Origin: Thecamonas trahens ATCC 50062 | Lineage: Eukaryota > Protista > Apusomonadida | DNA length: 64,000 bases | Assembly (NCBI RefSeq): GCF_000142905.1 | Contig: NW_013657607.1 | Coordinates: 36,066 to 100,065 of the forward strand | Direction of reading: 5' to 3' | Shown: piece by piece, positions 20,557 to 42,088 of the stretch | How positions within the stretch are numbered: the first letter of the stretch is position 1 | Layout of the letters: the number at the start of each line of letters is the position of its first letter | Position numbers and translations under genes: made by a program | Notes under the pieces: generated by a model | Told to the model about the DNA's origin: nothing | Database searches by the model: none | Seen by the model: only the letters and a program-made list of their open reading frames with translations

Positions 20557-23500
20557 CTATGTGCCCATGTCGGCGCTCACGAGAGTCCGGCATAGTACCG
20601 CTATGGCAATTGAAACAGGCGATCGTATGGGCGGCGCGATGAGCTTTGGCTTAGCGGCCTGGGTGAGGGGTGCGTTCGAGGAAGTGCTGCGGACCGTGGC
20701 CGAGTGGATGCCTCCATCGCGCTGTGACACGTGGCGGGCAATGCGGTCGGCAATCGAGGTGGTGCGGTACATGAGCGTCGGAGGCCGGCTAACAGAGTAC
20801 ATCGATGAGGTCTGCGAGAGCGACGACACAGACGACGCGTCCGAGCCAAACTGACCTAGGAGCGCTGGCTTCTGCGGTGGCGAGCTCCCGGTGCGCGAGG
20901 TTTGAACCAAAGTGTCGAGGGCAACCTCTTCGAGCACGTCACCAAGCCGCCCTGTTGACGAAGTTCGGCGCAGGCGCTTGCGCCGCCGGGATCGCTGTGC
21001 CGCCCGTGCTCTCTGCGCCGTCGTGATCCTCTGCTTCGTTCGCTCCAGCACAAGCCGCTGCAGCGACACCTTGCGAGTTTCCGACGTTCCTGAGAAAGAC
21101 GGCAATGACTCCACACCATGCGACCGGATCACCGACGTACTGTATGCATCCGAGAACGAGTCGGATGACTCGGAGCACACACGTGGCTCGCCCCATAGCT
21201 GTGTCGTCTTCTTTGTCGCCAGCCACTCGGGCGATCCGAGTGACGGCGGTTCGCGGAGGGACGGAGGTGTCTCCAGATCCGCCATCGTCGAGTTCAGTCG
21301 CTCTTCGTTGGACTTGGCCGAATCGCAGTGGGACAGCGACTGGTGGTACCACCCACCAACCTGTGACGACTCAAACATGGTCGACGACGACGACGACGAT
21401 AACGACAACGACGATGATGACGTTAACAAAGACTGGCTTGACTTGCCCAGCGGTTCGTGCGTCGATGAGCTGGCACCTGCACCACATCGTGGCTTCTCGC
21501 TCGAGGTATACAGGCCATCGGGCCCTGGACACGTGCGCGAGGCGTGCGAGACGTCGCCTCCGACGTCGTCATCGTGGGTGGTGACAGTGACGGCGACGCC
21601 CGACGCCACAAAGGTCGATGGATACTCCTCGGTCTGAGTTGGGAGCTCGGACGCCGAGCTCCCGTAGTACCGCTCGGATGTGACCGATGAGAGCGAGACG
21701 AGCGAGAAGATGTCAAACTTGACATCGTCGGCCTCGATAAACGAGAACGACGAGATCCATGATGCGATAAGGCCCGGTGGGAGAACCGTCGGCAGCGCCG
21801 CGCGCATCTCGCTGGACATAACAATCTGACCGGGCTCGGCAGCCATGGCGATGGCATCAGCATGGTGCATGCAGTCGCCAATGTAGTGGATGTGATGTGT
21901 GTCCTCGTCGATGGTGTGCATCGGCGAGCAGGCGTGGAGACCAATGCGGACCCGGAGTCCACGCCACACATACTGCAGCAAACCGTACGACGACGAGTTG
22001 CGGGAACGGCGGAGCTGCGACGGGCAGACGTCGTGGGTGAGAATGGGCCGCGGCCAATCGAGCTTGACAAGTGCGTCTTGGATGAGGACCGAGGCCGCGA
22101 CGACGTCCGAGGCAGCAGAAAGAGGAAAGACAAAGACAAACGAGTCACCGTCCGAGTTGGTCTCGTACCCGCCGGCCTGGGCTACAATCTCCCGGATACA
22201 CGAGTCATGCAGCTGCATGGCAACCTCCATCTCGCCCGGCAACTCCTCCCAGAGCGCCGGTGAGCCGTCGACGTCGGTGACCATGACTACAACCCGGCCA
22301 ACAGGTGCATTGGTCATGCGCATCTCCCACATCTCGGACGAGGTCGGGTCAGTTGCTGTCTTGGCCCGCGACCGGGAGAGGAAGATGACGGTGACGGTGG
22401 CAGTGATGAGGCAAGCACAAGCAAAGGTGCTAACAGCCATGGTGGTGGCCAACGCGCCAGAGATTGTGCTGCTGCTGCGTTGCGGGGCGGCGCTCGGCAC
22501 ACACCCATCGTCGCCGCCGCACACCCCACAGACATCAACCACCATGCCCGAGTCCGGCACCATGTCGCATCCCGCACACGATGTCGAGTTCCCCTCGCAC
22601 ACGCCACACTGGTCCTTGGTCGCGCCGTTGGCCCAGCACCGGCCGCACTCATCGCGGGCTGCGTCGCGACCAAAGCACACTCCGCAAGAGTCACGGTTGC
22701 GGTCGCCACCATGGCACACCCCGCAAGTGTCCTTGGCTGCGCCGCCGCCAAAGCAAATCCCGCACTCGTCGCGAAAGACGCCCGGTGCCAGGCCGGTCGT
22801 CCCGCTGACGCACGTCCCGCACTCGTCGAGGAACGCGCTCCCGCCGCAGATGCCGGCGCAGTCGTAGATCGCATGCGGCTCGCCGGGCGCGGCGCATGAC
22901 GAGATGCACGAGCCGATGCCCGAGTGTCCGCCGCACACCCCGCACCCGTCGTAGATAGCACCACCAAGCGGAGTCGGCACACCGTCACATCCGGCACACC
23001 CTGTCCCATCGCCACCGCACACGCCACAAACATCGCGGCGCGCGCTCGAGTGTGGCACGCCGTCGCATCCAGCACACGCCGAGCCATCACCAAAGCACAC
23101 GCCGCACGCATCCTTGGCCGCATTGCCGCCAAAGCACACGCCACAATCATCGAGTGCGGCGTGGCCGCCAAAGCACACGCCGCACGCGTCGAGGTCGGCG
23201 TTGGCAACGCGTCCCGTGCCGGCACCGGCGCACACGCCGCACTCGTCACGGCTCGAGTGTGGCGGACACGGCGCCGGCGCACAGGCCTCAGGCGGTTGAG
23301 GCACATACTCGCCAGTGGATGTGCAGGTGACAGAGATCTGGTCCGGGCCGCTGCCTGGGCCATCGGGCCCATCCAGTGCTTGGCCCGGCTCGCACACCAG
23401 GTCGAGGCTATCGCCAGCAGCCGCGAGCGCCGCACCCGTCAGCGGATTTTGGGCGATCGCGCCACCAGCCAGTGCCAGCTTTGGGCACACCTCGTAGTAG

Positions 23501-24069
23501 GCGACCCGCAGGACAGGCAGCGGGTCGAGAGTGACGACGGCATGATCGCCGGGCGCGCAGTCGGCGCGCAGCACGATCACCAGCCCAGCCTGTAGCCCGC
23601 CGGGCGCGTTCGTGTCGCCATCGCCCAGCAGATCCTGCACTGCCGCGCCGGAGAGAGACACGGCGGCGGCGCCGTCAGCCGTCAGCGGCAGCGAGACGTT
23701 GTGCGGCGGGCCGGCGGGCGTCCAGAGCCACGGATCGGCGGCGGCGGTCCAGGGCGGCAGCGGGGCGGAGGCGGCGGCAGTGACGGAGAGGCCGACGGCG
23801 GCCGAGGCGTTGACGGCAGCCAGAGTGAGGGCCGAGTCCGGGTGGAACCAGCGGTGACCAGTCAATGTCGTGAGTCCGGCCGGGAAGGACACGGCGAGGG
23901 CCACAGCCGTGGCGCACAGGTCGGCGGTGTGCGGGCCAGCGGCGAGCGGCGGGCCGATGGCAGCGGTGGCCGACGGCCCGGCGATGGTGCCAAAGGCGAT
24001 ACGGCGGGTGGCACCGGTGGCAGGGGAGGGGCCGAGGGCGACGAGGAGGAGCGCTACCGCAAGCGCCAT
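20557..24069 (-). CDS. Receptor-type class III nucleotidyl cyclase-like protein (sushi-like module, DxCGVCxG Cys-rich repeats, TM, cyclase, Ser-rich tail)
   Basis: Signal peptide MALAVALLLVALG (ATG 24069). About 15 DxCG[V/I]CxG repeats. TM helix. Cyclase motifs VVVMVTDVDGSPALWE, GGYETNSDGDSFVFVF, WRGLRVRIGLH and GQIVMS. Confidence 0.87.
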   Translation of the reverse strand: MALAVALLLVALGPSPATGATRRIAFGTIAGPSATAAIGPPLAAGPHTADLCATAVALAVSFPAGLTTLTGHRWFHPDSALTLAAVNASAAVGLSVTAAASAPLPPWTAAADPWLWTPAGPPHNVSLPLTADGAAAVSLSGAAVQDLLGDGDTNAPGGLQAGLVIVLRADCAPGDHAVVTLDPLPVLRVAYYEVCPKLALAGGAIAQNPLTGAALAAAGDSLDLVCEPGQALDGPDGPGSGPDQISVTCTSTGEYVPQPPEACAPAPCPPHSSRDECGVCAGAGTGRVANADLDACGVCFGGHAALDDCGVCFGGNAAKDACGVCFGDGSACAGCDGVPHSSARRDVCGVCGGDGTGCAGCDGVPTPLGGAIYDGCGVCGGHSGIGSCISSCAAPGEPHAIYDCAGICGGSAFLDECGTCVSGTTGLAPGVFRDECGICFGGGAAKDTCGVCHGGDRNRDSCGVCFGRDAARDECGRCWANGATKDQCGVCEGNSTSCAGCDMVPDSGMVVDVCGVCGGDDGCVPSAAPQRSSSTISGALATTMAVSTFACACLITATVTVIFLSRSRAKTATDPTSSEMWEMRMTNAPVGRVVVMVTDVDGSPALWEELPGEMEVAMQLHDSCIREIVAQAGGYETNSDGDSFVFVFPLSAASDVVAASVLIQDALVKLDWPRPILTHDVCPSQLRRSRNSSSYGLLQYVWRGLRVRIGLHACSPMHTIDEDTHHIHYIGDCMHHADAIAMAAEPGQIVMSSEMRAALPTVLPPGLIASWISSFSFIEADDVKFDIFSLVSLSSVTSERYYGSSASELPTQTEEYPSTFVASGVAVTVTTHDDDVGGDVSHASRTCPGPDGLYTSSEKPRCGAGASSSTHEPLGKSSQSLLTSSSSLSLSSSSSSTMFESSQVGGWYHQSLSHCDSAKSNEERLNSTMADLETPPSLREPPSLGSPEWLATKKTTQLWGEPRVCSESSDSFSDAYSTSVIRSHGVESLPSFSGTSETRKVSLQRLVLERTKQRITTAQRARAAQRSRRRKRLRRTSSTGRLGDVLEEVALDTLVQTSRTGSSPPQKPALLGQFGSDASSVSSLSQTSSMYSVSRPPTLMYRTTSIADRIARHVSQRDGGIHSATVRSTSSNAPLTQAAKPKLIAPPIRSPVSIAIAVLCRTLVSADMGT

Positions 24070-24439
24070 GGCGGGCCATGGTCGTCGGGGACCGCCTCTG
24101 TATACGCATGATGAGGGCATGGCGTCGGGTGCTCCGTCCCGCCCCGCCTCACTCTCACCCAATGCCGCAGGTGGAACGAGCGGATGAGCAGCGACGGACA
24201 GAACAGTTGGCAGGGAAAAAAACGTTTGTTGACAGATTGTGACCACGTGGGGGGGGGGGGGGGGGGGGGAGCCAATCACGGCGTGCGAGGCTGTCGACGA
24301 GCATGAGCAGGCCACACTGCCGGCCGAGTAGGAGTGTGTTTTATCCTTTGCGGAGTCGCATCAAGTGGCCGAGTCTGTGGCGAGCTGCTGGTCGTCGTGT
24401 GCGGGTGTGTCCGTCTAGAGTCGGTCCGGATCGGCACGG

Positions 24440-26332: not shown

Positions 26333-29300
26333 ATGAACTTCCACACGCCGTTTGTCTCGGGCGCAACGCTCCAGGCGCAGCCGCACACACCGTGGCCGGG
26401 CAGCGACCGGCTGGCGTACACGGAGCCGGCCGGCGGCAAGGCGGCCGGCTCGTCGGCGGTGGCGGCGCTGGTCAACGTCACGACGGGCAAGGTGCTGACG
26501 CGGGTGTATGAGGCGGCGGCAGGCGCGCTCCGGGCGGTGCTCGCGGCGCGGGCGGGCGACCGGGCGGCAATCGACCGGTGGACGCGGGCGGCGGCGGCGG
26601 AGAACGCGGCGCGCGGGCTGAGCGTGGGCGACGACGGGTACCTCTCGGTCCTCGGGGTGGGCGCATGCGGGCGGACGCCGCTCGGCCCGCTGGGCGAGGG
26701 CTGGCGGACGGGCGGCGGGGCGCCGGTGGCTCCGCTCCCGCCGCATCTGCGCGGCTTCCACGTGACGCTCTTCGGCCCGCCGGACTCGGCCAAGCTCGCC
26801 GTCAACGCCATGAACGCCGCCGGGCGCAAGCTGCCGGGCGAGCCGGCGCTGGTGGCCGAGCTCGTCGCCGCCGCGGGCATGGTCCCCAAGTGGGGCGCCG
26901 ACGACGAAGACTCCAAGACGCCGCTCTTTGGCGACCTTGCCGCCGCGGCGCACCACCTCAATGCGTGCTTTGACGGCAGCCTGGAGACGACCGACGCGGC
27001 GTCGGGCAAGCACTACGCCATCGCGCCGGCCGAGCCGGCTGCGGGCGTCTTCCCCTCGCTGCCCATCAAGCGCATCCCGGGGCTGGACCTGCCGTGCCTC
27101 GCCGTGACCATTGCTGACGAGGCGGCTGCCGGTGGCCGTGACACGGTCCCGTTGCACATGCTCGACCTGGTGGCGCACGTGGTGGCCAACGCGCACCGGC
27201 CCGAGGCGCTCACCTTTTACGTGCCCAAGCTGGAGAATGAGGAAGAGGCCGCGTACCTCTCTCTGCTCATCGGCGCGGTGGAGGAGGCCATTGTGGCCCT
27301 CGGCGTGGCGCCCGACTACGTTCCGGGCACCATCCGCGTCATCCTCGTCCTGGAGAACCCGCGGGCGGTCTTCCGCGTCCACGAGATGATGGATGCGCTG
27401 TACCCGTACTTTGCCGGCGCCTCGCTCGGCTGGCACGACTACCTCGCGTCGACGGCGCGCCTCTTTGCCCACGACCCGCAGTACTCCATCCCGGTCAAGG
27501 CCGACCCGGACATTGTCATCAAGCACATCAAGGAGTCGCACGTCATGCTCGCCGACGTCGTCGGTGCTCGCGGCGGGCTCAAGATCGGCGGCATGTACGG
27601 CATTCTCCCGTCGTCGCGCGAGCTGGCCGATCCGTCCATGCAGGTTACCCTCATCGGCTACGTCCGCGACGTGGTGACCCAGCTCAAGCGCGGGCTCGAC
27701 GGCTTCTGGGTCGCCCATCCCGACTTTGTCCGCATCGGCATCGCCATTGTCCAGGCGTGGCGGAGCGACGCGCTCCCCGCCCTCATCTCGGCCCTCATCC
27801 TGGACCCGGCGTCGGCTGCCGAGCTGGAGGCCTTTGTGGCCGGGCCGGACATCGACGGCCTCGCGGTGGACGACCCCAAGTACCCGCGCGCCCTCCTTGC
27901 CGCCGACGTCGGCGTCTCCAACGTTGTGGCCAACTCAGACGAGGCCGAAGTCCGGTACAACATCTTCCAGGCCCTGCAGTACCTCGCCGACTGGCTGGTG
28001 GGCAACGGGTGCGTGGCGCTGCCGACAACTGTCCGCGGCGTCGCCGTCCGGGTCATGGACGACCTCGCCACGACCGAGCGCTCGCGGTGGGAGCTCTGGG
28101 CCGAGCTCTTTCACGGCCGCGTCGACGTCTACGACTACCTCCGCTTTGTGGAGGAGGAGCTCAACTACATCCGCCGCGACAAGACCGACGGCCTCAAGGC
28201 TGTCCAGGTCAAGTGGGCCCGCGCCGAGAAGTGGTACCCAGTCGCCGCCAACATTCTTCTCCTCCTCACCCTGCCCACGCCCGACGGCTCCATCATCGAG
28301 TTTGCGCCGCGCCTTCTCCTGCCGTTTACCCTCGACGCGGTGCGGAGCGCGGCCGATCCGTGGGCGGCGGCCACGGCGCTCGAGCCGGCCAAGTTTGCGC
28401 TCCCGGCCCGGGTCCTCCGCTGGCGCACTCTCTTTGCCGCCATCGCCCACCCGCGCCTTGCGCTCGCCTTTTCGCACACCAACTTTCCCGATGCCGGCCG
28501 TGTCGCGGCCTACCTCCTCGACGAGCCGGATACTCGGCTGACGGTCGACGACGTCATCTACGCCGCCGACTTTCACGGCGACATCGGAGCTGCCGCCCGT
28601 GCGGCCGCTCACGAGCAGGCCGAGCAGGCGGGAGTCGCCGGCTCGGGCCTCGAGGGCGAGCTTGTGGCCGGCGCTGAGGCGTACGCCGCCAAGTACGGCT
28701 TCAAGTTCCTCATCTCGGCTGCTGGCAAGTCGGGCGCCGAGCTCCTCGCTGAGCTCAACACCCGCCTCCACGACTCGAGCCCCGAGGCCGAGCTTGCAGA
28801 GGCCTCGGCGCAGCTCACCGCCATTGCACTCCGCCGGCTCCGCGGCGACGACTCGGTCTCGGCGTCGACGGCCGAGTGGCTTGTGGCGCTCGCTGGGTCG
28901 CACGGCGTCGAGTCTGTTGGCTACGCCTGCCTCTCGCGCGGCGACACGCTCCTGGAGCCGCCGACTGCCGCTGCCGAGTCGATGATCAAGCACTCGGTGC
29001 TTGAGGTTGTGGCGTCGCGGAGCGATCTCGAGTGGCGGGCGCCGCTGCCACAGGTGGTCGAGGCGCAGACGGTGGTGGCTGGTGCGTCGGCATGCCCGAC
29101 CTCGTCGCTCTTCCAGATGGCCTCGATGTCCAAGACACTTGGCACCGCGCTTGCACTCGAGTACTTTGTGGGCACGGCCTCACGGTTCCTGCCGAACGCC
29201 GTGCCGGTTGTGGGCTTTGGCCTCGAGACGCCGGTGGCGGCGATGCTCGCCGCCTGCGGCTCGCCGTTTGTCCTCGAGCTCGACGAGAGTGTGCCAGGCG

Positions 29301-31366
29301 CCGACGCGAGCTGGCTCGACGCGCTCACGCTCTCGCACCTTGTGGACCACTCCGGGCTTGGCCAGCCGTACGTCTTTGGCCTCCCGTCATGGGTGGCTGC
29401 GTCGGGTGCGCCGGTTGAGCTGATGGAGGGCAAGACGCCCGGGGCGATGGAAGCCGGCTACGCGCCCATCAAGGTGGGCAAGGCGCCCGGCTCGCAGTTT
29501 GGCTACTCGGGCGGGGCCTTTATTCTCGTCCAGCACCTGCTCGAGGCGTTTTCGGGCGTGAGCATTGTGGACTTGATGGAGGCATGGCTCCCGCAGCTCG
29601 GGCTTGACCCGACGACAGAGCTTGTGTTTGGCGACGTCGACGCGGTCCTCCCGGACGGGTACACAGCGGTGGCTGGGGCGCGCGACTCGAAGGCGCCGGT
29701 CCCGCGGCTGCATTTTCCGGCGCTTGCCGCCGGCGCGTGGGGTACGCCGACCTCGATCCTCAAGTTTACGGCGGTGCTCGCGCAGGCGTTTGCCTCGCCG
29801 GGTGCGACGTACCCGCTCTCGCACGACACGGCGGTGCAGATGCTCGGCGCGCCGCTCGATCGCGGGGCGGTGGCGTTCCAGAACGCACGGGCCGGGCGTG
29901 GGCTCTTTGTGGTGCAGGCCGGATCGAACCGGGTCATGATCCACCAGGCGTCCAACGACGGGTACACCGGCATCTACGCGGTGGTCTTCTCAGGCCCGGA
30001 CGCCGGCTCCGGCTTTTGCACGGTCTCGACGGGCGACCTCGCCGGGGTGTACACCAACGTGGAGATGGCGCGCAACGTGCTCCGCGGGCTCGAGTGGACG
30101 GGCGTGGACCTCGATGCCTTTGCGCCGCTCGAGTCCTTCGACCCCTCGCCGTGGCCGGCGCACCAGATCGTGAACCAGGCGTACCGGCAGCTGCTGTTTG
30201 CGGCGTTTGAACCGGCGGTGCCGGAGACCATTGCGCGGCCGGCATCGACGCCGATCCGCGAGCTCAACGAGTACGACGTGGCATCGGGCGCGGCGCTGGT
30301 GGCGACGTCATCGGAGGCCTTTGCGCCGGCGAGCAACCTTGTCGAGCCGCGGGTGGCGGTGTTTGACCCCGAGGCCTTTGGCCTGCAGGGCAAGATCATG
30401 GACTCGTGGGAGACGGCGCGGCACCGGTCGTACCCGCCGCATCCGGGCTACGACACGGCACACTTTGCGGTGACCAAGAGCCCGGCGGCCGTGGGCTACG
30501 TCTGCATCTCGACGCTCTTCCACGACGGCAACCACGCGCAAGCGGCCAGCGTCGAGTACGTGCCGGTCGGCGGCGGCGAGTGGCGCGAGCTGCTGGGCAA
30601 GATCCCGCTCGATGGGCACTCTGAGCACTGGTACGCGCTGGAGACGCCGACGCTCCCGGTGGGCGAGTTCCGAGTGCTCAACTACCCGGACGGCGGCATC
30701 ACCCGGATCGGGCTCTACCCGCCGGGCACGGCCGGGCTGCCTGCGGGCCTTGCGCCTGGCGCGCCCGTGGTGGTCCGGTCGGCGGCGCCGATCCCCAAGG
30801 TCGTTCCGGTCACGCACCACATGGCCGAGGCATTCCGCGCCCAGGCGCGCGGCATCAAGCCAAAGGGCGCGCCGCTGGCCGACGCGGCGTGTCTGGCGGC
30901 CGGCGGGCTCGTCGTCGCCGCGTCCAACGAGCACTACGGCCCGGCGGTGGCTGCGCTCGCGGCGTACCCGCCGATGGGCATGTTTGACGGCTTTGAGTCG
31001 GCGCGCTCGCGGGTGGCCGGCCACGTCGACTGGCTGGAGATTGCCCTTGCCGAGCCGACAGTCCTCGGTGCCGTCGTCCTCGACTTTGCCTTTTTCCGCA
31101 ACAACAACCCGTGGCGGGTCACCGTCCTCGCTCTCCGCCCGGGCGCCGACGGCAGCGCCGACTCTGACTGGCTCCCGCTCGTCGACCGCCTCCTCACCAA
31201 GGAGTACGCTGGCAACGTTCTTGTCGTCCGCGCTGGCGACCACATCGCCCTCTCGGCGTCGTACGCCTGGTCGCAGCCCATCACTCGGGTCAAGGTCATC
31301 TCCGAGCCCGACGGCGGCATCAACCGTGTCCGTCTCCTCCGTGCGCCGCCTGCCTCTAAGCTCTAG
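26333..31366 (+). CDS. Peroxisomal four-domain fusion: malate synthase / OHCU decarboxylase / beta-lactamase-family serine hydrolase / allantoicase, with PTS1 (SKL)
   Basis: Uninterrupted 1677-aa ORF. Malate synthase (about 26735-28400): ADDEDS, KRIPG, YVPKLE, VLEN, GWHDY, GGM, DGFWVAHP, WLVGNGCV, MDDLATTERSR. OHCU decarboxylase (about 28420-28842): FHGDIG, EQAGV, YAAKYGFKFLISAAGKS, IALRRL. Serine hydrolase (about 28870-30090): FQMASMSK, YSGG, HQASNDGY. Allantoicase (about 30270-31345): GKIMDSWETARH, YPDGGITR, MFDGFESARSR, PDGGINRVR. Ends SKL-stop. Confidence 0.93.
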   Translation: MNFHTPFVSGATLQAQPHTPWPGSDRLAYTEPAGGKAAGSSAVAALVNVTTGKVLTRVYEAAAGALRAVLAARAGDRAAIDRWTRAAAAENAARGLSVGDDGYLSVLGVGACGRTPLGPLGEGWRTGGGAPVAPLPPHLRGFHVTLFGPPDSAKLAVNAMNAAGRKLPGEPALVAELVAAAGMVPKWGADDEDSKTPLFGDLAAAAHHLNACFDGSLETTDAASGKHYAIAPAEPAAGVFPSLPIKRIPGLDLPCLAVTIADEAAAGGRDTVPLHMLDLVAHVVANAHRPEALTFYVPKLENEEEAAYLSLLIGAVEEAIVALGVAPDYVPGTIRVILVLENPRAVFRVHEMMDALYPYFAGASLGWHDYLASTARLFAHDPQYSIPVKADPDIVIKHIKESHVMLADVVGARGGLKIGGMYGILPSSRELADPSMQVTLIGYVRDVVTQLKRGLDGFWVAHPDFVRIGIAIVQAWRSDALPALISALILDPASAAELEAFVAGPDIDGLAVDDPKYPRALLAADVGVSNVVANSDEAEVRYNIFQALQYLADWLVGNGCVALPTTVRGVAVRVMDDLATTERSRWELWAELFHGRVDVYDYLRFVEEELNYIRRDKTDGLKAVQVKWARAEKWYPVAANILLLLTLPTPDGSIIEFAPRLLLPFTLDAVRSAADPWAAATALEPAKFALPARVLRWRTLFAAIAHPRLALAFSHTNFPDAGRVAAYLLDEPDTRLTVDDVIYAADFHGDIGAAARAAAHEQAEQAGVAGSGLEGELVAGAEAYAAKYGFKFLISAAGKSGAELLAELNTRLHDSSPEAELAEASAQLTAIALRRLRGDDSVSASTAEWLVALAGSHGVESVGYACLSRGDTLLEPPTAAAESMIKHSVLEVVASRSDLEWRAPLPQVVEAQTVVAGASACPTSSLFQMASMSKTLGTALALEYFVGTASRFLPNAVPVVGFGLETPVAAMLAACGSPFVLELDESVPGADASWLDALTLSHLVDHSGLGQPYVFGLPSWVAASGAPVELMEGKTPGAMEAGYAPIKVGKAPGSQFGYSGGAFILVQHLLEAFSGVSIVDLMEAWLPQLGLDPTTELVFGDVDAVLPDGYTAVAGARDSKAPVPRLHFPALAAGAWGTPTSILKFTAVLAQAFASPGATYPLSHDTAVQMLGAPLDRGAVAFQNARAGRGLFVVQAGSNRVMIHQASNDGYTGIYAVVFSGPDAGSGFCTVSTGDLAGVYTNVEMARNVLRGLEWTGVDLDAFAPLESFDPSPWPAHQIVNQAYRQLLFAAFEPAVPETIARPASTPIRELNEYDVASGAALVATSSEAFAPASNLVEPRVAVFDPEAFGLQGKIMDSWETARHRSYPPHPGYDTAHFAVTKSPAAVGYVCISTLFHDGNHAQAASVEYVPVGGGEWRELLGKIPLDGHSEHWYALETPTLPVGEFRVLNYPDGGITRIGLYPPGTAGLPAGLAPGAPVVVRSAAPIPKVVPVTHHMAEAFRAQARGIKPKGAPLADAACLAAGGLVVAASNEHYGPAVAALAAYPPMGMFDGFESARSRVAGHVDWLEIALAEPTVLGAVVLDFAFFRNNNPWRVTVLALRPGADGSADSDWLPLVDRLLTKEYAGNVLVVRAGDHIALSASYAWSQPITRVKVISEPDGGINRVRLLRAPPASKL

Positions 31367-33408: not shown

Positions 33409-35096
33409 CTATGGCTTGTGCTCAGCGGTCATGGCCACAAGTGCGGCCAGCCAGGCGCGGGCAAAGGCGGCGACGAGGTCGGCATCGACCAGCTCGGCAG
33501 CGTAGCAGACGACGGCAGAGAGCTCACCGCCGAGTGTCATCGTCCGCAGAGCAAGGAGGCCGTTTGAGCACGCGGCCGACTGGCCCCACACCGCCGACTC
33601 GATGACCGCGCCCGAGGTCGGCGCCGCCAGCGCATCAGCTGCGCCGAGGTTGGACACCTCCACCGTGGACTCGCGTAGATCGGCAGCCGCCGCCAGCGCC
33701 GCCTTCTCCGCCGCCATCCATCGGCTCGCCGGCGCCGGTACCAGCGGCATGAGGCCCGGCAGCCTCGCCGCACGGCTCATGCCGCGGACCAACTCGGCCC
33801 GCACCGCACGCGCCTCGGCCCACAGCGATGCGCCGCCGCCTCCGGCCACCGTCCGGCAGCCGCCGAGCGAGCGATAGATCGCCACCGACGACGAAAACGC
33901 CCCGAGATCGGCTGCCGGCGGCGGCGCGATGTCTGCTCGCAGCGCGTTGCGCGCCAGGGAGACCGGCGTCTCGATGCGGATGGCCAAGGTGTTGGCGGCG
34001 TCGTCGTCGGCGGTGACCTGACCACCGCCGCGCCGGCCGCCGCCACAAACGCGGCGTGGAACCGATGGGTCTGCCTCAAGCGCCGCCGCTCGTGCCGCGC
34101 TATCCAGTCCGCGCGGTGCCTCTCCGCGAAGGACTGGCTCGGTGAGAATGAAGGCAGTTCAGCTTTGCGGTAGCGATGCTCGTGAAGGACGGCGAACCTA
34201 TGGCTTGTCCGCCAGCCCGCAGATTTAACTGACCGACGCAAGTCTCAGATGAGCGTTCCGCCGCCAAGACACATCGTGCAACCGGCGGCCGATAAACCTT
34301 GTGCTTGNNNNNNNNNNNNNNNNNNNNNNNNNNNNNNNNNNNNNNNNNNNNNNNNNNNNNNNNNNNNNNNNNNNNNNNNNNNNNNNNNNNNNNNNNNNNN
34401 NNNNNNNNNNNNNNNNNNNNNNNNNNNNNNNNNNNNNNNNNNNNNNNNNNNNNNNNNNNNNNNNNNNNNNNNNNNNNNNNNNNNNNNNNNNNNNNNNNNN
34501 NNNNNNNNNNNNNNNNNNNNNNNNNNNNNNNNNNNNNNNNNNNNNNNNNNNNNNNNNNNNNNNNNNNNNNNNNNNNNNNNNNNNNNNNNNNNNNNNNNNN
34601 NNNNNNNNNNNNNNNNNNNNNNNNNNNNNNNNNNNNNNNNNNNNNNNNNNNNNNNNNNNNNNNNNNNNNNNNNNNNNNNNNNNNNNNNNNNNNNNNNNNN
34701 NNNNNNNNNNNNNNNNNNNNNNNNNNNNNNNNNNNNNNNNNNNNNNNNNNNNNNNNNNNNNNNNNNNNNNNNNNNNNNNNNNNNNNNNNNNNNNNNNNNN
34801 NNNNNNNNNNNNNNNNNNNNNNNNNNNNNNNNNNNNNNNNNNNNNNNNNNNNNNNNNNNNNNNNNNNNNNNNNNNNNNNNNNNNNNNNNNNNNNNNNNNN
34901 NNNNNNNNNNNNNNNNNNNNNNNNNNNNNNNNNNNNNNNNNNNNNNNNNNNNNNNNNNNNNNNNNNNNNNNNNNNNNNNNNNNNNNNNNNNNNNNNNNNN
35001 NNNNNNNNNNNNNNNNNNCGCCCACCACGCCCATCCGCCGCGCCGCCCCGGCACACCGCGCCCGACCACCTCCACCACTTTGCGCGCCACTTCCAT
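33409..35096 (-). CDS. Probable CoA-dependent acyltransferase (alcohol acetyltransferase / PapA5 condensation-like); spans the gap, frameshift at about 34017
   Basis: The C-terminal part has FHAAFVAAAGAA, PVSL..., VEVSNLG, AVWGQSA and MTLGGELSAVVCY, as in CAT-like acyltransferase C-lobes. The HxxxD region would fall in the N gap, so it cannot be seen. The 5' start is tentative. Confidence 0.5.
34308..35018. other. Assembly gap (N run)
   Basis: Run of N. Confidence 1.
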
Positions 35097-35236
35097 GCTG
35101 TTGCTGCGGTGGCGGCGCGGGAGTGCGGTGCTGCCGCTCTTCGACGCGCGAGGCGCTTGCCGCTTGTATTGAGGAGCAACGGTCGTGGTGTTGTCACGGT
35201 AGATGTGTGCAAAAATATTTTGCTTCGTATCAATGT

Positions 35237-37243
35237 TTACTCCTCGCCACCTGGCCCGCTGTCCGAGTACTCGTCGATGGCGACAATGGCGCCCGAGAGT
35301 GCCGAGGCGGTCAGGCCGGGGTGGGCGGCGTCGAGCTGGGCACGGAGCTGGGCGACCGAGGTGTTGGCGGCGCAGCCGAGGAGGTGGCAGACCGCGTTGG
35401 GGACGTAGCCATCGGGGAGGAGGTGCTCCGACGAGCTCATGACGACGACAAAGGCGGCGAGGACGGGCGGCGGGAGGTAGGCGGCGGCGAGCTCGATGAC
35501 ACGGACAACGCCCTTGCCGAAGCGGACCGAGTTGAGGACGGCGGCGGCATCGCGGAGGTTACCCGACGATGCGATGGCCACCGCGCCCTTGGTGTACGCC
35601 CCGGCCTCGAGGTAGACGGCCCAGGCGAGCGAGGGCGCGCCCATGTCAAGCAGCACGTCGCCGAGAGAGGGCACAAGCTCGTTCGCCCGCATGACGAGGG
35701 TGAAGAACTTGACGGCGTCGTACGGCGCGCCCGTCGCCACATCGACCGCGTCCAGCGCCGCCAGGATCTCCTCCGCCGCCAGACCCTCGCCGCCGGCAAA
35801 GAGCGCGTCGAGATAGGCCGAGAGGAGCTCCACGCCGCCGCCCTGCGCCACCGCCAGCGCACGCCGTCGCTCGTCCATCATGACCAGCGAACGGAGCGCC
35901 CGTACCGCTCCCGGCACATCGCCGTCACCCGCCGCAGCAGCCGCCCGCTCCGCCAGCTCCGTCGCCAGCGCCGCCGCCTTCAGCCGCTCTTCGGACACAA
36001 TGGCGAGCTTGGCCTCGGCCAGCGGACCGTACGCCGCGTACTCGCCTCCTGCCGCGTGGAAGGCGGCACGAACGTCGGGCCACGGCAGGCCGCCACGATG
36101 AGCAGCGGCGGCGATGAGGCTCCGCCGCAGCGGCGGTGAGTCCACTGCCGCCAGTGGCAGCCCGCACACCGCCGCACGCTGCACGCACGTGTACCACTTG
36201 TCGTCCTGCGGCTGCGTCTGCGTCTTGCCCAGAAGCTCGATTTTGATGACCTCGCCAAGTGCAAGCACCGGCACCACCGCCACGTCGTTTCCGCTCTCCT
36301 CGGCGTGGATCTCCGCCGAGACGTATGTCCACACCCCGTCCGGGCCCTCCCTCGCCACGCCGTCGCCTCCTGCAATCGCGCCCGGCGAGATGGCCGCTCC
36401 TCGGTCGCCGGGCGCCATGACCAGCGCTCGCGATGAGGTCGCGGACACAGCCTCGCCCTCCTCTCCCTCCTCACTCTCCTCGCCCTCGCCCTCGCCCTCG
36501 CCCTCGCCCGAGTCACGCGGGAGAAAGCCGATCGAGAAGCGGTAGGTCACCGGGGCGTACGTCGGCTCGCCCGGCTGGAAGACAGCCTGGAACGGCTTGA
36601 TGGCCAGGTGGGTGACGATGGCCGGCGCGTCGAGGCGGAGGAGAAGGTACTCGTTGGCATCGGCTGTCTCGGAGCCGATCGACGACCAGAACGACATCGA
36701 GTTGTCCAGCACCTCGCACGGGCCCTGGTCGACGTACCCGGCGCCGGTCTTCGGGTCGATGTCCACCGACGATGCGTCGGCTGCCTCCACCACCAGCGGC
36801 ACAACCCGCTCCGGTACCGCCAGCTTCTGCAGCGCCACGTACGCCTCGCGCCACTCGCTCCGCTGCAGCGGCAGGTTGCGCGCCAGCACCCTGCCGCCCG
36901 CCGACAGCCGCCGCCCATCGTCAGGGCCATCGCCGCCATCACCACCATCGCCGCCATCGCCGCCATCGCCGCCATCGCCATCCTCGCCGCCATCATCGTC
37001 GCCTTCGCCGTCTTGGCCGCCTTCGTCTCCGCCCCCACTTTCGCCATTGCCTCGGCCTCGGCCCGCCCCGCGGCCCTCGGCCCGCCCCGCCAGCGCCCGC
37101 CAGAGCGATCCGTCGCCGGCCGCCGCCCGCCAGCGGCGACTCACCCTGCTTGCCGCCGCCAGCGACACGGGGTCCAGGAAGCTCAGTACATGCAGCACAA
37201 GCTCGACGGGCAGCCCATACGTGCTTCCAAACGGGTCCTCCAT
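35237..37243 (-). CDS. F-box protein with a galactose-binding-like domain resembling the plant At4g00755 family, plus a helical C-terminus
   Basis: F-box LPVELVLHVLSFLDPVSLAAASRVSRRWR. Motifs SFWSSIG, IKPFQAVFQPGEPTYAP, WTYVS and IELLGKTQTQPQDDKWYTCV. ATG 37243 preferred. Confidence 0.85.
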   Translation of the reverse strand: MEDPFGSTYGLPVELVLHVLSFLDPVSLAAASRVSRRWRAAAGDGSLWRALAGRAEGRGAGRGRGNGESGGGDEGGQDGEGDDDGGEDGDGGDGGDGGDGGDGGDGPDDGRRLSAGGRVLARNLPLQRSEWREAYVALQKLAVPERVVPLVVEAADASSVDIDPKTGAGYVDQGPCEVLDNSMSFWSSIGSETADANEYLLLRLDAPAIVTHLAIKPFQAVFQPGEPTYAPVTYRFSIGFLPRDSGEGEGEGEGEESEEGEEGEAVSATSSRALVMAPGDRGAAISPGAIAGGDGVAREGPDGVWTYVSAEIHAEESGNDVAVVPVLALGEVIKIELLGKTQTQPQDDKWYTCVQRAAVCGLPLAAVDSPPLRRSLIAAAAHRGGLPWPDVRAAFHAAGGEYAAYGPLAEAKLAIVSEERLKAAALATELAERAAAAAGDGDVPGAVRALRSLVMMDERRRALAVAQGGGVELLSAYLDALFAGGEGLAAEEILAALDAVDVATGAPYDAVKFFTLVMRANELVPSLGDVLLDMGAPSLAWAVYLEAGAYTKGAVAIASSGNLRDAAAVLNSVRFGKGVVRVIELAAAYLPPPVLAAFVVVMSSSEHLLPDGYVPNAVCHLLGCAANTSVAQLRAQLDAAHPGLTASALSGAIVAIDEYSDSGPGGEE

Positions 37244-37630
37244 CCTCTCTTTTTTGCGCTTCCACAGAGTGCCGTGCCGCCCCGCACGGCCTCTGCGCCC
37301 ATCCCCCTCCCTGCTCGCCGGCTGACAACGCGACTCGCCGTGGGGCTCCCCCCCGTCTCCCTCTCGGTCCAACCTCGCCACAATTTTTTTGGCGTGGGGC
37401 ACCCCCCACCCCCCACCGCCCCGTGCCGACCACACACTCCGCTGCCAGCTCCTCACCGCGGAAGATGTGGCCTTGGGTGAGTGGGTGAATCAATGGGTGT
37501 TAATCGGCGGCGATGAGGCGGAAGTGTCGGGTGTCACTCCGGCCAGTGTCGGAGGGCGGGCGGGCGGGTGGAGGGGGCGGGCGCAAGGGGAAAGCATATG
37601 ATTGCGCGAACCACGGAGAACCACAGTCGG

Positions 37631-40600
37631 TCACAGCTCGTCCAGACGGGCCCAAGATGGGAGGTAGTGGTCGGCGAGGCGGGCGTAGAGAGCGCGGCAG
37701 GTGAGGGCAAGAGCAATGCCGTCCGCGTGTGAGAGGTGGGTGAGCAGGTGGTAGTGGAGGAGCTCAGGCGGGAGGTGGAGGAGGAGGCGCGGATCGCGGG
37801 CGCCCGACCCCGCGTCGGCCAGCGGCGGCCGGAGCCTGCCGGCGAGGACGATGGGCGGGTGCGAGGCTGTGACGGCGAGGCCAGTCTGCAGGCCAACGGC
37901 CACGGCATCGACGTACACTCCGCCAGATCGCACCGGCCCGCATCCGCTCAGCGTGTTGTGTCCGGGCATCGTGCCGGCCGCCGCCGCCACCCGCATCGCC
38001 ACCGCCCGCGGGAGGTAGAGGGCCAGTACGGCGACGGGCGGCGAGAGGTAGCCGCCGGTGCCATCGGGCGCCCAAACCGCCAGCTGCTCGCGGCCCCAGG
38101 AGAGGAGCTTTCCATCAGCAGCCTCTAGCGCATCGGCCAGCACCCGCGACGGCTGCTGCAGCACTGATGTCGCTGAATCGCCAAACGCCCCGCCGCCCAC
38201 CCTCGCCCACACCCGCAGCGTCCCGTCGTACGACCACGAGACCAGGCCGCCGTTGCGTCGCACCAGCACACCCTTGACCCCGCGGGTGTGCCCGCCGAGC
38301 ACCTGTGCCGCCCGGGCCTCGTACAGCCCGCGGCCTCGCTCGCGCTCGCGCTCGTCATCGCCATCGCCATCGCCATCGCCATCGCCATCGCCATCGCCAT
38401 TGCCATCATCCTCCATCGCCCGCCACACCCGCACTGCTCCGTCGCCAGAGCACGAGACAATGTGTGGGAGGGCGCCTGTGTGGCGCTCGAGGCGGACGGC
38501 GCCACGGACCCAGCCTGTGGGGCAGGCGAGCTGCTGCAGCCGCTGATAGCCGGCATGCGTGCCGGGCGCTACCGATGGGGACGGCGGGGCAGGCGCCCAG
38601 ATGACCATAGTCGGCTCCTTGGACCAGGTGAGGAGGACGGGGAGGGTGACCGTAGGATGAGGCGTCGGATCGGCATCGCAGTCGAGGTCGTCGGCGATGG
38701 CGCCGTGGCGGAGGACAAGGACGCCGAGGACGTCGCTGGCGTGGGCGTCGATGGTGGCCACAGGCGCGGCGAGGTATGCCTTGGCCTCGGGCTCGTCCGC
38801 CTGCCAGACAGCAACCGAGCCATCGGCGGCCCAGGTGGCGAGGAGTGGGAGGCGGCCCCATCGGCGGCGCGGCGAGGCGACGGCAGCGCCGAGCACGGGT
38901 GCATCGTGCCCGCAGAGCTGCTGCGCGCCTGCAGCGTCACCAGCACCGCGGACCATGCGCCACAGCCGGAGACAGCACCCAGCGTCATCGCTCCCGCCCC
39001 AGGTGGCCAGTGCCAAGGCCCGTGGCCCGGGCGTGAGAGCGACCACGCCCGCGGCGCTGCCTGCGCCTGCTGCGCGCCCGGCGCGCGACGCGCTCGACGA
39101 CGGGCGCCACATCCGCAGCGCGCAGTCTGTCGACCACGAAAGCACGCTCCGCGCGTCGGGTGTCACCACCGCGCCGACCAGCGGATAGCCGAGGCGGTAG
39201 CTCGTCGTTGTCCCGTCCGCTGGCAGCCAGACGGCCACCCGCCCGGCGCCTGGGCGCGCGCCAGACCATCCCACCACCACCGCCGCCCCATCGCACGCCA
39301 CCACGGCGCCGGCGCCGAGGAGCGGGCCCTCGACGGCGAGCTGCGCCATCGCATCGGCGGCCGGCACAGCCTCGCCCTCGCCCTCGGTCCTGGCTGCCAG
39401 CGGTGCATGCCACATGGCCACCAAACCGTCGGCCCGCCACGCCACAACCGCGCCGCATGGCCCGCCAACGACGCCCGCGATGTCTGCCCACGGCGCGACG
39501 AGGCGGGCGATGGGGACGAGGACGGCCGGCGCAGCGGGCAGGGCGCCGATGATGACGACGACGCTTCCGGCCCAGGCCGCCACCGCCGGGAGCGGATAGG
39601 CGGAGCTGAGTGACACCACGCCGTCCAGCAGCGCCTGGCCGAGACCGGAGATCGGCGCCATGGTGGTGGCGTACGGCGGCGAGCTCTTGGTGAGGACGAC
39701 CTCGGCGGCGCCGCGGGCCCAGCGGACGATGACCGGCTCGAGGGTGGCGACGATGGCCACCGCGGGCGGACCGGGTGCGGAGACGAGGGCAGGGACGGCC
39801 GAGAGGGCGGCGTGGAGGACGAGTCCGCCGAGAGCGTCGACTCGCCAGATGCCCGCGCTGCCATCGGCGGCCAACGAGACGGCGCCAAAGGCAGTGCTCT
39901 CGCCGCGGGCGCGGAGTGCTACCAGCGCCACCAGCGGGCCGGGCCTCGGATGGACGACCTGGGTCGGGACGGCGTGGTACGCCATCTCGCCTCCCGCCGC
40001 GTCCGATCCGGCACCGATGGGCGTCCACACCACCAGGCGCCCGGAGGGGGTGCCGGCGACGACGGTGAGCAGCTGGACGGGCGCGGGCGATGTCGATGAC
40101 GATGCCGATGCCGATGGCGGCAGGTGCGCGGCCAGGGCGACGACGGCCATCGGCGTGTGACGGGTCTTGAGCGGCGGGGCCGAGGCGGTGGCGAGGCGAG
40201 CGAGGACGGCACCGCGGTCTGTGTCGACGACCCAGGCCGAGCCGACCGAGTCGACGGCGACGGCGAGGCCCGCGGCGCAGGCGTCGACGGCGACGGTGGA
40301 GGCGATGAGCGGGATGGGCTCCTCGGTGAGGACCGGCCGCGGCAGCGGGGTGAGCGGGACGACCGATGGGGCCGGAGCGCAGAGGGCGGCGCGCAGGAGC
40401 GGCATCAACTCACGCGGCGCGCCCTCACCGCCGAGATGGGCGACTAGCTCGCCGGGCAGCGAGGTCGGCTCGCCGAGGTCCATGGTGGCGCCGGCGCGCA
40501 GGGCGCCGACCAAGGCGCCGAGCTCATGCCCGGCGCTGGTGCAGGCGAGAGTGTCGATGACCAGCCCGTCGACGGCGCACACCGCCGATCCGCACATCCG

Positions 40601-42088
40601 CCGCACCAGGTACCCGAGGTCGGTAAGCGCCGCTGCAGCGCCAGCCGCGCAGCCGACCTCCACAACTGCCGCCGTCCCGCGGCGGACGGCCCACGAGCCC
40701 GTCGCCCCGCTGCGCAGCGCCGCTGCTGCCAGCCGTTCGAGCGCCATCATTCCGCTGCTCGCCGGCGATGCTCCGGCTGCCGCCGCCGCTACCGCCGCCG
40801 CCGCAAGAGGCGGCCATCGGGCGGGCCCGCCAGGAAGAGCGGTGCTCACCAGGGCGAGGGCAAGCGCTGCAGCTGCGGGGCGCGGGAGGAGCTCGCCAAG
40901 CGCGCTGCGGACGATGGAGGGGATGACCCGCTCATTGTATGCGTCGTGGGCGAGCGAGAGTAGGCCGGCATCGTGGAGCTGGGCGACGAGCGCGTGGGCG
41001 GCGGGCATGTCGGCGCCGGTGATGGCGGCGACAAAGGCGGCGAGCATGGCCGGCGCGACACCGGCGGTGGGCGGGAGGGCGGCGAGGGTTGCGAGGAGTC
41101 CGCGGGCCGGCGGGGCGCATGCGGCGAGGGCGCCGGCGACCAGATCGGTGAGGGCGCCGGTGGGCGGGGCGGAGGTCCAGGCGGCGAGCGCAGCCGCAGT
41201 GGGCTCGTCGCTGCGGGCGCGGGCATGGGCGGGATGGCCACGGCGGCCGAGGGTGCGGCGACCCAGAGCGGGACGGTGGCCGCGACCGGGTCGATGGCGA
41301 GGACGGCGTGCGGCGGACGGATGGCGGAGGTGAGGAGGGCGAGATGGGCGGCGTCCGGCAGCGGATCGACCACCAGCAGCAGCGCGTGGCCGGCGCGGGC
41401 CATGGCGAGCAGCAGCCGCTGCATCTCAAGCACAAGCACCCGCGCGTTGACGGTTCGCGCCGCCAGTGGACACGTCGCCGGATCGAGGCTGGTCAGCGCG
41501 TCGAGCGTGGACGCGAGCGTCGAGGCGAGCGACGGCGGCCACGGGAGGGCGCAGACGGCGACGGGGACAATGGCAGTAAACGCGCCGCAAGAGTCGAGCG
41601 CAGCGCCAAGCGCCTCGCCCAACGCCTGCTCGGGCGGCGAGCCGACGCCGACCGCCGGCCGCCAGCCGCTTCCCAGCACTGCGGGCGCCCGGCCCAAGGC
41701 GAGCGCCGGTGCCTCGCCGGCGGGCACGACGACAACCGCCGCGGGTACCGCCGTCAGCGCGCCAACCACCTCGCTGGCCCATTGGGCGGCCCATTCGTCG
41801 ACCGACGAGGCAGTCGGCGGGGCGGTCGGCCAGGTGCCGCTGATGGCAGGCCCAGGCGCCACGAGGTGCATGGCGGCCGGCCCGCGCGGCGGTTGGGGGC
41901 TTGGCGAACGCGGCGTGGTCGACAGGCTTGAAGAAGTCGAGGTGGAGCCCGACGGATCGGTGGCAGCCAGGACCGCCGACAGCAGGCGGCCGCGCTTGAC
42001 CGGGCGTGGTGAGTGGGCATGTGCCGTAGACTCGCGGCGCTTTCGTGGGGACGATGCGGCGAGCGGCGGGAGGCGGCCCGACGACGAC

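Follow-up and report, generated by a model that had tools for sequence, protein, structure and literature searches.

A four-domain fusion protein encoded by the apusomonad Thecamonas trahens ATCC 50062 contains a domain of the beta-lactamase/PBP fold that is likely to be the allantoinase of the organisms carrying it, as judged from comparative genomics, gene fusions, operons, the predicted fold and the conservation of sequence motifs. The gene lies within a stretch of 64,000 nucleotides, hereafter the window (contig NW_013657607.1, positions 36,066 to 100,065 of the forward strand), and consists of a single open reading frame (ORF) without introns, in which a malate-synthase-like (MSL) module is followed by an OHCU decarboxylase, a PF00144 Beta-lactamase (BL) domain and an allantoicase (ALC). 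There is a good chance that this serine-dependent enzyme constitutes a third class of EC 3.5.2.5, which would be non-homologous to both the AllB/DAL1 metallo-amidohydrolases and PuuE. The features of the gene, in window coordinates, are as follows.

26333..31366, + strand: four-domain ureide-pathway protein, 1677 aa (translation, Pfam and NCBIfam)
26333..28402, + strand: MSL domain, aa 1-690, with a divergent Pfam malate synthase TIM barrel and C-terminal domain at aa 282-616
28403..28867, + strand: OHCU decarboxylase domain, which makes (S)-allantoin (PF09349, 59.6 bits, aa 736-837; TIGR03180/NF010372)
28868..30118, + strand: serine hydrolase domain of the BL/PBP fold, the proposed allantoinase (aa 846-1262; Pfam core aa 918-1218)
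29123..29134, + strand: motif 1, S931-M-S-K934, with the predicted nucleophile Ser931 and the predicted general base Lys934
29504..29515, + strand: motif 2, Y1058-S-G-G, with Tyr at the YxN position and Asn replaced by an invariant Gly
29942..29965, + strand: motif 3, H1204-Q-A-S-N-D-G-Y, at the KTG/HxG position (family consensus HQ[AG]ANDG[FY]R)
30230..31363, + strand: allantoicase domain with two jelly-roll repeats, aa 1319-1462 and 1517-1673 (PF03561, 132 bits in two stretches; TIGR02961/NF010371)
31355..31363, + strand: S-K-L at the C-terminus, read from the translation and matching the type-1 peroxisomal targeting signal (PTS1)

The residues of the three motifs are exactly those given in a first-pass annotation of this DNA, and the Pfam domain order agrees with its placement of the BL domain between the OHCU decarboxylase and the allantoicase; the N-terminal MSL domain and the C-terminal SKL of the same ORF are additional to that entry. 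SKL is a canonical PTS1, and we infer a peroxisomal location for the four-domain protein. The position of the BL domain between an allantoin-making and an allantoate-using domain supports a role in the conversion of allantoin to allantoate. Moreover, since the other three modules are assigned, one step and one module remain, and that step is therefore attributed to the BL domain. The protein would thus form an assembly line, in which OHCU is converted to (S)-allantoin by the OHCU decarboxylase domain, allantoin to allantoate by the BL domain, allantoate to ureidoglycolate and urea by the allantoicase domain, and ureidoglycolate to glyoxylate and urea by the MSL domain acting as a ureidoglycolate lyase.

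The distribution of known allantoinases was analyzed by whole-genome six-frame searches with the AllB and PuuE models at their curated cut-offs. The fusion set comprised 40 genomes, mostly from Bdellovibrionota, and the control set 40 Myxococcota genomes with a stand-alone (non-fusion) allantoicase, an enzyme that was found in 74 of the 301 sampled Myxococcota genomes and is not of the fusion type in 73 of these 74. Among the fusion genomes, PuuE never scored above the cut-off (0/40) and AllB did so in a single genome (1/40, G002), whereas the control genomes possess either AllB (28 genomes, often with the gene adjoining allantoicase) or PuuE (10 genomes) but never both, 38 of 40 having one of the two. 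The difference between 1/40 and 38/40 corresponds to a Fisher p of 6e-19, a value that is overstated, as the genomes are related and the two groups belong to different phyla. The absence of AllB/DAL1 and PuuE from fusion-bearing genomes, which the first-pass annotation had proposed to check, was thus borne out in 39 of 40 genomes as well as in the source genome. Together with the recurrent ALC fusion and the urate-pathway operons described below, this exclusion strongly supports the allantoinase role that had been inferred from the fusion context.

Matches to the AllB model below the cut-off were also considered as divergent allantoinases. The five best of them (280–300 bits, in five fusion genomes) were rejected, being either dihydroorotases (574–584 bits to PRK09060) or dihydropyrimidinases (608–614 bits), the latter encoded beside methylmalonate-semialdehyde dehydrogenase. 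In G009, G010, G017, G026 and G037, the best AllB-model matches reach only ~120–140 bits and were left unclassified. As a separate observation, a dihydroorotase-like AllB-model match (120–145 bits) containing one in-frame stop was seen in G026 (G026:C1:2992083-2993288), as well as in G030, G036, G009, G040, G037, G014 and G011. In these Bacteriovoracaceae matches the stop codon is TGA, with TAA/TAG in two genomes, and it could reflect two adjacent genes, a frameshift or recoding.

The loci encoding bacterial relatives of the BL domain provide a second line of evidence. A survey of one genome per species, scanned with the signature motifs of the subfamily, revealed 228 stretches encoding relatives, mostly in Bdellovibrionota (Bacteriovoracaceae, Oligoflexia and Bdellovibrionales) and some in Planctomycetota and Myxococcota; cultured carriers include Peredibacter sp. 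HCB2-198 and Oligoflexus tunisiensis Shr3. Among the 80 of these loci that were fetched, to which all locus counts refer, the BL and OHCU decarboxylase domains lie within one ORF in every case, accompanied by allantoicase in 79 and MSL in 77. Next to the fusion, HIU hydrolase is encoded in 60 loci, PuuD urate oxidase in 52, XdhABC in about 25 and AllA in one, the locus that lacks MSL. The operons of the bacterial fusions cover all remaining steps between urate and glyoxylate. The association with uricase, HIU hydrolase and xdhABC genes thus answers positively the question raised in the first-pass annotation about the neighborhoods of bacterial homologs. No candidate allantoinase gene recurs among the neighbors in the 80 loci. 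The possibility that the true allantoinase is an overlooked conserved gene of these operons was rejected, the commonest unassigned neighbor families being a response regulator (11/80) and guanine deaminase (4/80); MoeA also recurs.

A shorter form of the fusion also occurs in operons. P0012, a BL-ALC protein of 747 aa, is encoded in an operon with the order AllA, BL-ALC, OHCU decarboxylase, PuuD, HIU hydrolase, xdhA, xdhB and xdhC. Two loci from Pseudobacteriovorax (L009:9437-19437 and L019:8540-18549) encode a BL-ALC protein without MSL and OHCU domains, separate AllA and OHCU decarboxylase genes, and adjoining PuuD, HIU hydrolase and xdhABC. In these two loci allantoinase is the sole unfilled step and BL the sole unassigned domain, which makes them the discriminating case for an allantoinase role. 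A different configuration was observed in Planctomycetota-type loci (L087:5990-6901, L078, L082, L076 and L025), where the four-domain fusion occurs with a cofactorless uricase (PF01014) and without a membrane PuuD. One of them, L076, bears the name Chitinophaga pinensis; as its BL domain hardly differs from those of Planctomycetota, the label or the bin of this metagenome-assembled genome (MAG) is doubtful.

With few exceptions, the BL domain occurs fused to allantoicase, in the forms BL-ALC, OHCU-BL-ALC and MSL-OHCU-BL-ALC, in both bacteria and eukaryotes. Among the representatives matched with the domain alone, 39 of 40 proteins of at least 600 aa carry this fusion, the exception being P0124. 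About twenty proteins of 1400–1775 aa have the complete MSL-OHCU-BL-ALC architecture, including P0001 (1635 aa, BL domain 56% identical to that of the window) and P0002, both of which end in SKL. Stand-alone BL-subfamily proteins of ~400 aa also occur, one of them in the haptophyte Phaeocystis cordata. Distant bacteria and eukaryotes share the fusion with the same domain order, at 30–57% identity. In an unrooted maximum-likelihood tree of 125 BL domains, the window's domain clusters with P0001, P0002 and P0003 (SH-aLRT 96–100), and this group lies outside a large clade composed mostly of Bdellovibrionota. The phylogeny implies a transfer between bacteria and eukaryotes, to which no direction can be assigned because the tree is unrooted.

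The membership of the BL domain in PF00144 is indicated by a Pfam match at aa 918-1218 (E 1.4e-11, 44.6 bits against a gathering cut-off of 27). An AlphaFold2 model of aa 845-1262, built with 21 input sequences, has a mean pLDDT of 83.2 and a pTM of 0.86. Foldseek comparisons of this model with solved structures of the serine beta-lactamase/PBP fold gave a probability of 1.00, E-values of 1e-16 to 1e-12 and TM-scores of 0.55–0.71 at 12–19% identity, the matches including a family-VIII esterase (7spn), LACTB (7v21), Pab87 (2qmi), D-amino-acid amidase (2drw), class C beta-lactamases and the Streptomyces R61 DD-peptidase. The same families were retrieved when a profile of the domain alignment was compared with PDB sequences (128 matches in the PF00144 family, ~50 bits). 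Both the model and the Foldseek matches point to the two-domain, alpha/beta plus all-alpha fold that is characteristic of PF00144. On the other hand, when the BL domain alone was compared by HMMER with 1.84 billion cluster representatives, only 721 proteins were identified at E<1e-3, 56 of them at E<1e-30, which sets the subfamily well apart from the huge PF00144 family.

The catalytic motifs of the subfamily are highly conserved. In an alignment of 54 full-length domains, motif 1 retains S931 and S933 in 53 sequences each and K934 in all 54; motif 2 retains Y1058 in 54, S1059 in 53 and G1060 in 53; and motif 3 retains H1204 in 54, Q1205 in 51, N1208 in 52 and G1210 in 54. The corresponding signatures ASLSK, FxYSGGGF and HQ[AG]ANDG[FY]R are kept in 123, 124 and 122 of 125 homologous domains, bacterial ones included. 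The SxxK of PF00144 is thus present as S931-M-S-K934 (123/125), and H1204-Q-A was counted as the third motif (K/H-[ST/x]-G on strand beta3), with the family form H-Q-[A/G] and an invariant His. The first-pass annotation had described the latter as an HxG triad altered to HQA. HQA is indeed present in the window's protein but is not fixed, Ala being found in 29 and Gly in 25 of the 54 sequences, which represents ordinary variation within the family. At the YxN position Tyr1058 is invariant and Asn is replaced by an invariant Gly, and in the aligned sequences it is this Y-S-G in place of YxN, not HQA, that appears as the distinguishing mark of the subfamily. A class C beta-lactamase (AmpC) was rejected as the identity of the domain, which has YSG and HQA instead of YAN and KTG and is 12–16% identical to class C structures. 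Judging from the sequences and the structural model, the BL domain represents a distinct subfamily of genuine serine hydrolases and is probably catalytically active. The Asn of YxN touches the acylamido side chain of the substrate in penicillin-recognising enzymes; by analogy, its loss would be consistent with a different, small polar substrate.

The substrate and chemistry of the BL domain can be proposed by analogy with the acyl-enzyme catalysis of beta-lactamases, DD-peptidases and D-amino-acid amidases. In this mechanism, Lys934 and Tyr1058 would activate Ser931 for attack on C4, a carbonyl carbon in the hydantoin ring of (S)-allantoin. Opening of the ring would give an allantoyl-serine ester, and a water molecule activated via Tyr1058 and Lys934 would then release allantoate.

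The source genome encodes the preceding steps of the pathway, uricase and HIU hydrolase, both on contig C78. Its best AllB-model match is a dihydropyrimidinase (548 bits to TIGR02033), and neither PuuE nor AllA was found in it by model searches. Apart from the fusion gene, searches of the genome gave no allantoicase, no copy of the BL subfamily and no gene matching the malate synthase A model. On the basis of the latter, the source genome may have no malate synthase of the glyoxylate cycle, if malate synthase G is absent as well.

The N-terminal MSL domain is about 680 aa in length, longer than a typical malate synthase, and only distantly resembles the models of that enzyme: PF01274 and PF20659 match weakly (57 and 32 bits), and TIGR01344 gives 95.8 bits against a cut-off of 594.5. 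In the alignment with E. coli malate synthase A (3cuz), the equivalent of Arg276 is Trp, whereas those of Glu250, Asp278, Asp447 and Trp365 are kept, the Mg ligands and the catalytic Asp being among these retained residues. Zebrafish malate-synthase-like protein (DrMSL) is an assayed ureidoglycolate lyase, and the proposed marks of such lyases are a kept glyoxylate site, the replacement of Arg276 as well as Trp365 (numbered as in E. coli malate synthase A) and a non-conserved acetyl-CoA site (PMC10120013). DrMSL is similar to the MSL domain of the window in its membership of the malate synthase superfamily, the loss of the Arg276 equivalent and the association with allantoicase, and the window's protein carries a PTS1; however, Trp365 is replaced by Met in DrMSL (PMC10120013), whereas the window's domain keeps Trp.

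The genome context of MSL is in agreement with this function. AllA is present in one of the 40 fusion genomes (G004), which is the one whose fusion is without MSL; MSL and AllA therefore replace each other in fusion genomes. Many bacteria also possess stand-alone MSL relatives of about 680 aa that are 50–57% identical to the window's domain. One such protein, ~690 aa in length and 51% identical, was observed in an apparent allantoin operon of Desulfogranum japonicum (GCA_000429945.1; L104:981-11485), with the order polysaccharide deacetylase (PuuE-like), ABC transporter, Asp/Glu racemase, MSL, cupin, M20 amidohydrolase and GntR; ureidoglycolate cleavage is the only step of this operon that has no other assigned gene. 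This suggests ureidoglycolate lyase activity for bacterial MSL proteins, whose usual annotation is 'malate synthase' or 'aldolase/citrate lyase family'. From genome context and sequence, the window's MSL domain is a probable ureidoglycolate lyase rather than a malate synthase.

Several observations weigh against the assignment of allantoinase activity to the BL domain. The fusion set (mostly Bdellovibrionota) and the control set (Myxococcota) differ in phylum, and their genomes are not phylogenetically independent. One fusion genome, the 11.3-Mb MAG G002, also carries a true AllB. Two control genomes, G137 and G155, have neither AllB nor PuuE nor a BL-subfamily gene in the genome searches; the prediction of a stand-alone BL gene in them was thus not matched, and these MAGs may be incomplete. 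Because of these two genomes, absence from a MAG is imperfect evidence. In the source genome, the assembly of which may be incomplete, an AllB gene split by many introns could escape a six-frame search, and the dihydropyrimidinase (a hydantoinase) found there and in some of the bacteria could have a side activity on allantoin. Finally, the absence of the Asn of YxN is unusual among active enzymes of the BL fold, and we know of no PF00144 member that opens a hydantoin ring.

These points leave room for other explanations. The conserved catalytic motifs and the tight link to purine catabolism predict some ureide-related hydrolysis, which could be a step other than the opening of allantoin, with HIU, ureidoglycolate, ureidoglycine, urea or a side product as the substrate and something else acting on allantoin. 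HIU hydrolysis is likewise the cleavage of a cyclic amide, and AllA is missing from 39 of 40 fusion genomes. Both of these steps were named as alternatives in the first-pass annotation and both have been discarded: a transthyretin-type HIU hydrolase is encoded by a separate gene in the source genome (contig C78) and beside 60 of 80 fusions, whereas ureidoglycolate cleavage by the BL domain is contradicted by its coexistence with AllA in L009 and L019 and by the interchangeability of MSL and AllA. Since another ureide step would also leave the specific loss of AllB and PuuE unexplained, we consider it unlikely as the function of the domain.

Still less probable is a non-catalytic or regulatory module, such as a scaffold, an oligomerisation domain or a ligand sensor, with allantoin being opened by an unrecognised enzyme or a promiscuous dihydropyrimidinase. 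The lost Asn of YxN and the unusual third motif are in line with this possibility, and the source genome encodes a dihydropyrimidinase, as do no fewer than three of the five fusion genomes with classified sub-threshold matches. However, pseudoenzymes usually lose their catalytic residues, whereas the catalytic Ser, Lys, Tyr and His of the BL domain are kept in about 98% of 125 bacterial and eukaryotic sequences. Many fusion genomes have no match classified as a dihydropyrimidinase (for example, the five genomes with unclassified matches of ~120–140 bits), and the operons contain no further recurring gene family that could represent an unrecognised enzyme. The domain might also be merely carried in the fusion, with a function unrelated to purines, such as a peptidase, esterase or beta-lactamase; among solved structures, esterases, D-peptidases, LACTB and class C beta-lactamases come closest to it, and the automatic annotation in IMG names the subfamily 'CubicO group peptidase (beta-lactamase class C family)'. 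Such a function is very improbable given the preservation of the fusion and its domain order over distant bacteria and eukaryotes, the remoteness of the subfamily from the bulk of PF00144 and the anti-correlation of the BL fusion with known allantoinases.

Compared with the described allantoinases, the proposed BL-type enzyme would be analogous, not homologous. It would share with AllB/DAL1 (TIGR03178) the substrate, the product and the place in the pathway next to allantoicase, but the latter is a binuclear-metal TIM-barrel amidohydrolase, and the window's protein has no match to the amidohydrolase family. The reaction proposed for the BL domain is also that of PuuE (TIGR03212), which is metal-independent, frequently occurs linked to or fused with OHCU decarboxylase, and was itself recognized by genomic logic, in genomes with a urate pathway but without allB. 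However, PuuE has a polysaccharide-deacetylase fold and no SxxK serine nucleophile; the BL domain is unrelated to it, and the PuuE model does not match the window's protein. The fold and the layout of SxxK, Tyr and third motif are common to the BL domain and the PF00144 serine hydrolases, among which beta-lactamases open cyclic amides by an acyl-serine mechanism. The BL subfamily differs from other PF00144 members by YSG in place of YxN, by HQ[AG]ANDG[FY]R in place of KTG/HxG, and by being embedded in purine-catabolism fusions and operons. Another protein joining urate-pathway enzymes is the bifunctional allantoicase/OHCU decarboxylase (NF010371/PRK13797), whose model is partly matched by the window's protein; it comprises two domains and has neither the BL-fold nor the MSL module. 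The full-text literature searched contains no account of an allantoinase with the beta-lactamase fold or of the third domain of the fusion, most subscription journals being outside its coverage.

The contig is eukaryotic, as neighboring ORFs carry F-box, WD40 and cyclase domains, and the 28.7-Mb assembly has split genes, e.g., uricase. The neighbors, which show no link to purine metabolism, are

35240-37456, - strand: F-box protein
37634-41047, - strand: WD40-repeat protein
20560-24315, - strand: adenylate/guanylate cyclase-domain protein, 1252 aa

The GC content falls sharply to 0.44 at positions 34001-36000, compared with 0.60–0.76 in the rest of the window, and positions 34100-36139 hold long ORFs that overlap one another on both strands and in several frames; candidate explanations for this low-GC stretch are a repeat, a mobile element or an AT-rich intergenic island.

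Marine metatranscriptome contigs 100% identical to the fusion gene cover positions 29811-30047, 30144-30294 and 31063-31276. They are few and short, originate from a poly(A)-selected run and from one other sample with two runs, and provide weak evidence of expression of the gene. Marine and estuarine metagenome contigs cover much of the gene, and the source organism or a very close relative is present in the sea.

We propose, as a composite that is fairly probable although less assured than the allantoinase role by itself, that a metal-independent serine allantoinase and a single-chain line leading from OHCU to glyoxylate and two molecules of urea are common to the peroxisomes of marine protists and to predatory Bdellovibrionota, which would imply inter-domain transfer. 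The fold and the reaction are each known, and what would be new is their pairing. If the assignment is true, hydantoin ring opening joins the known chemistry of the beta-lactamase/PBP fold, and the automatic labels 'beta-lactamase', 'CubicO peptidase' and 'malate synthase' would be corrected for these proteins. The four-step fused enzyme offers a system for studying substrate channelling of unstable ureides and has a bearing on marine nitrogen recycling from purines. The BL-type enzyme would also fill the allantoinase gap, left by the lack of both AllB and PuuE, in marine protists and in a phylum of predators that live on the nucleic acids of their prey.

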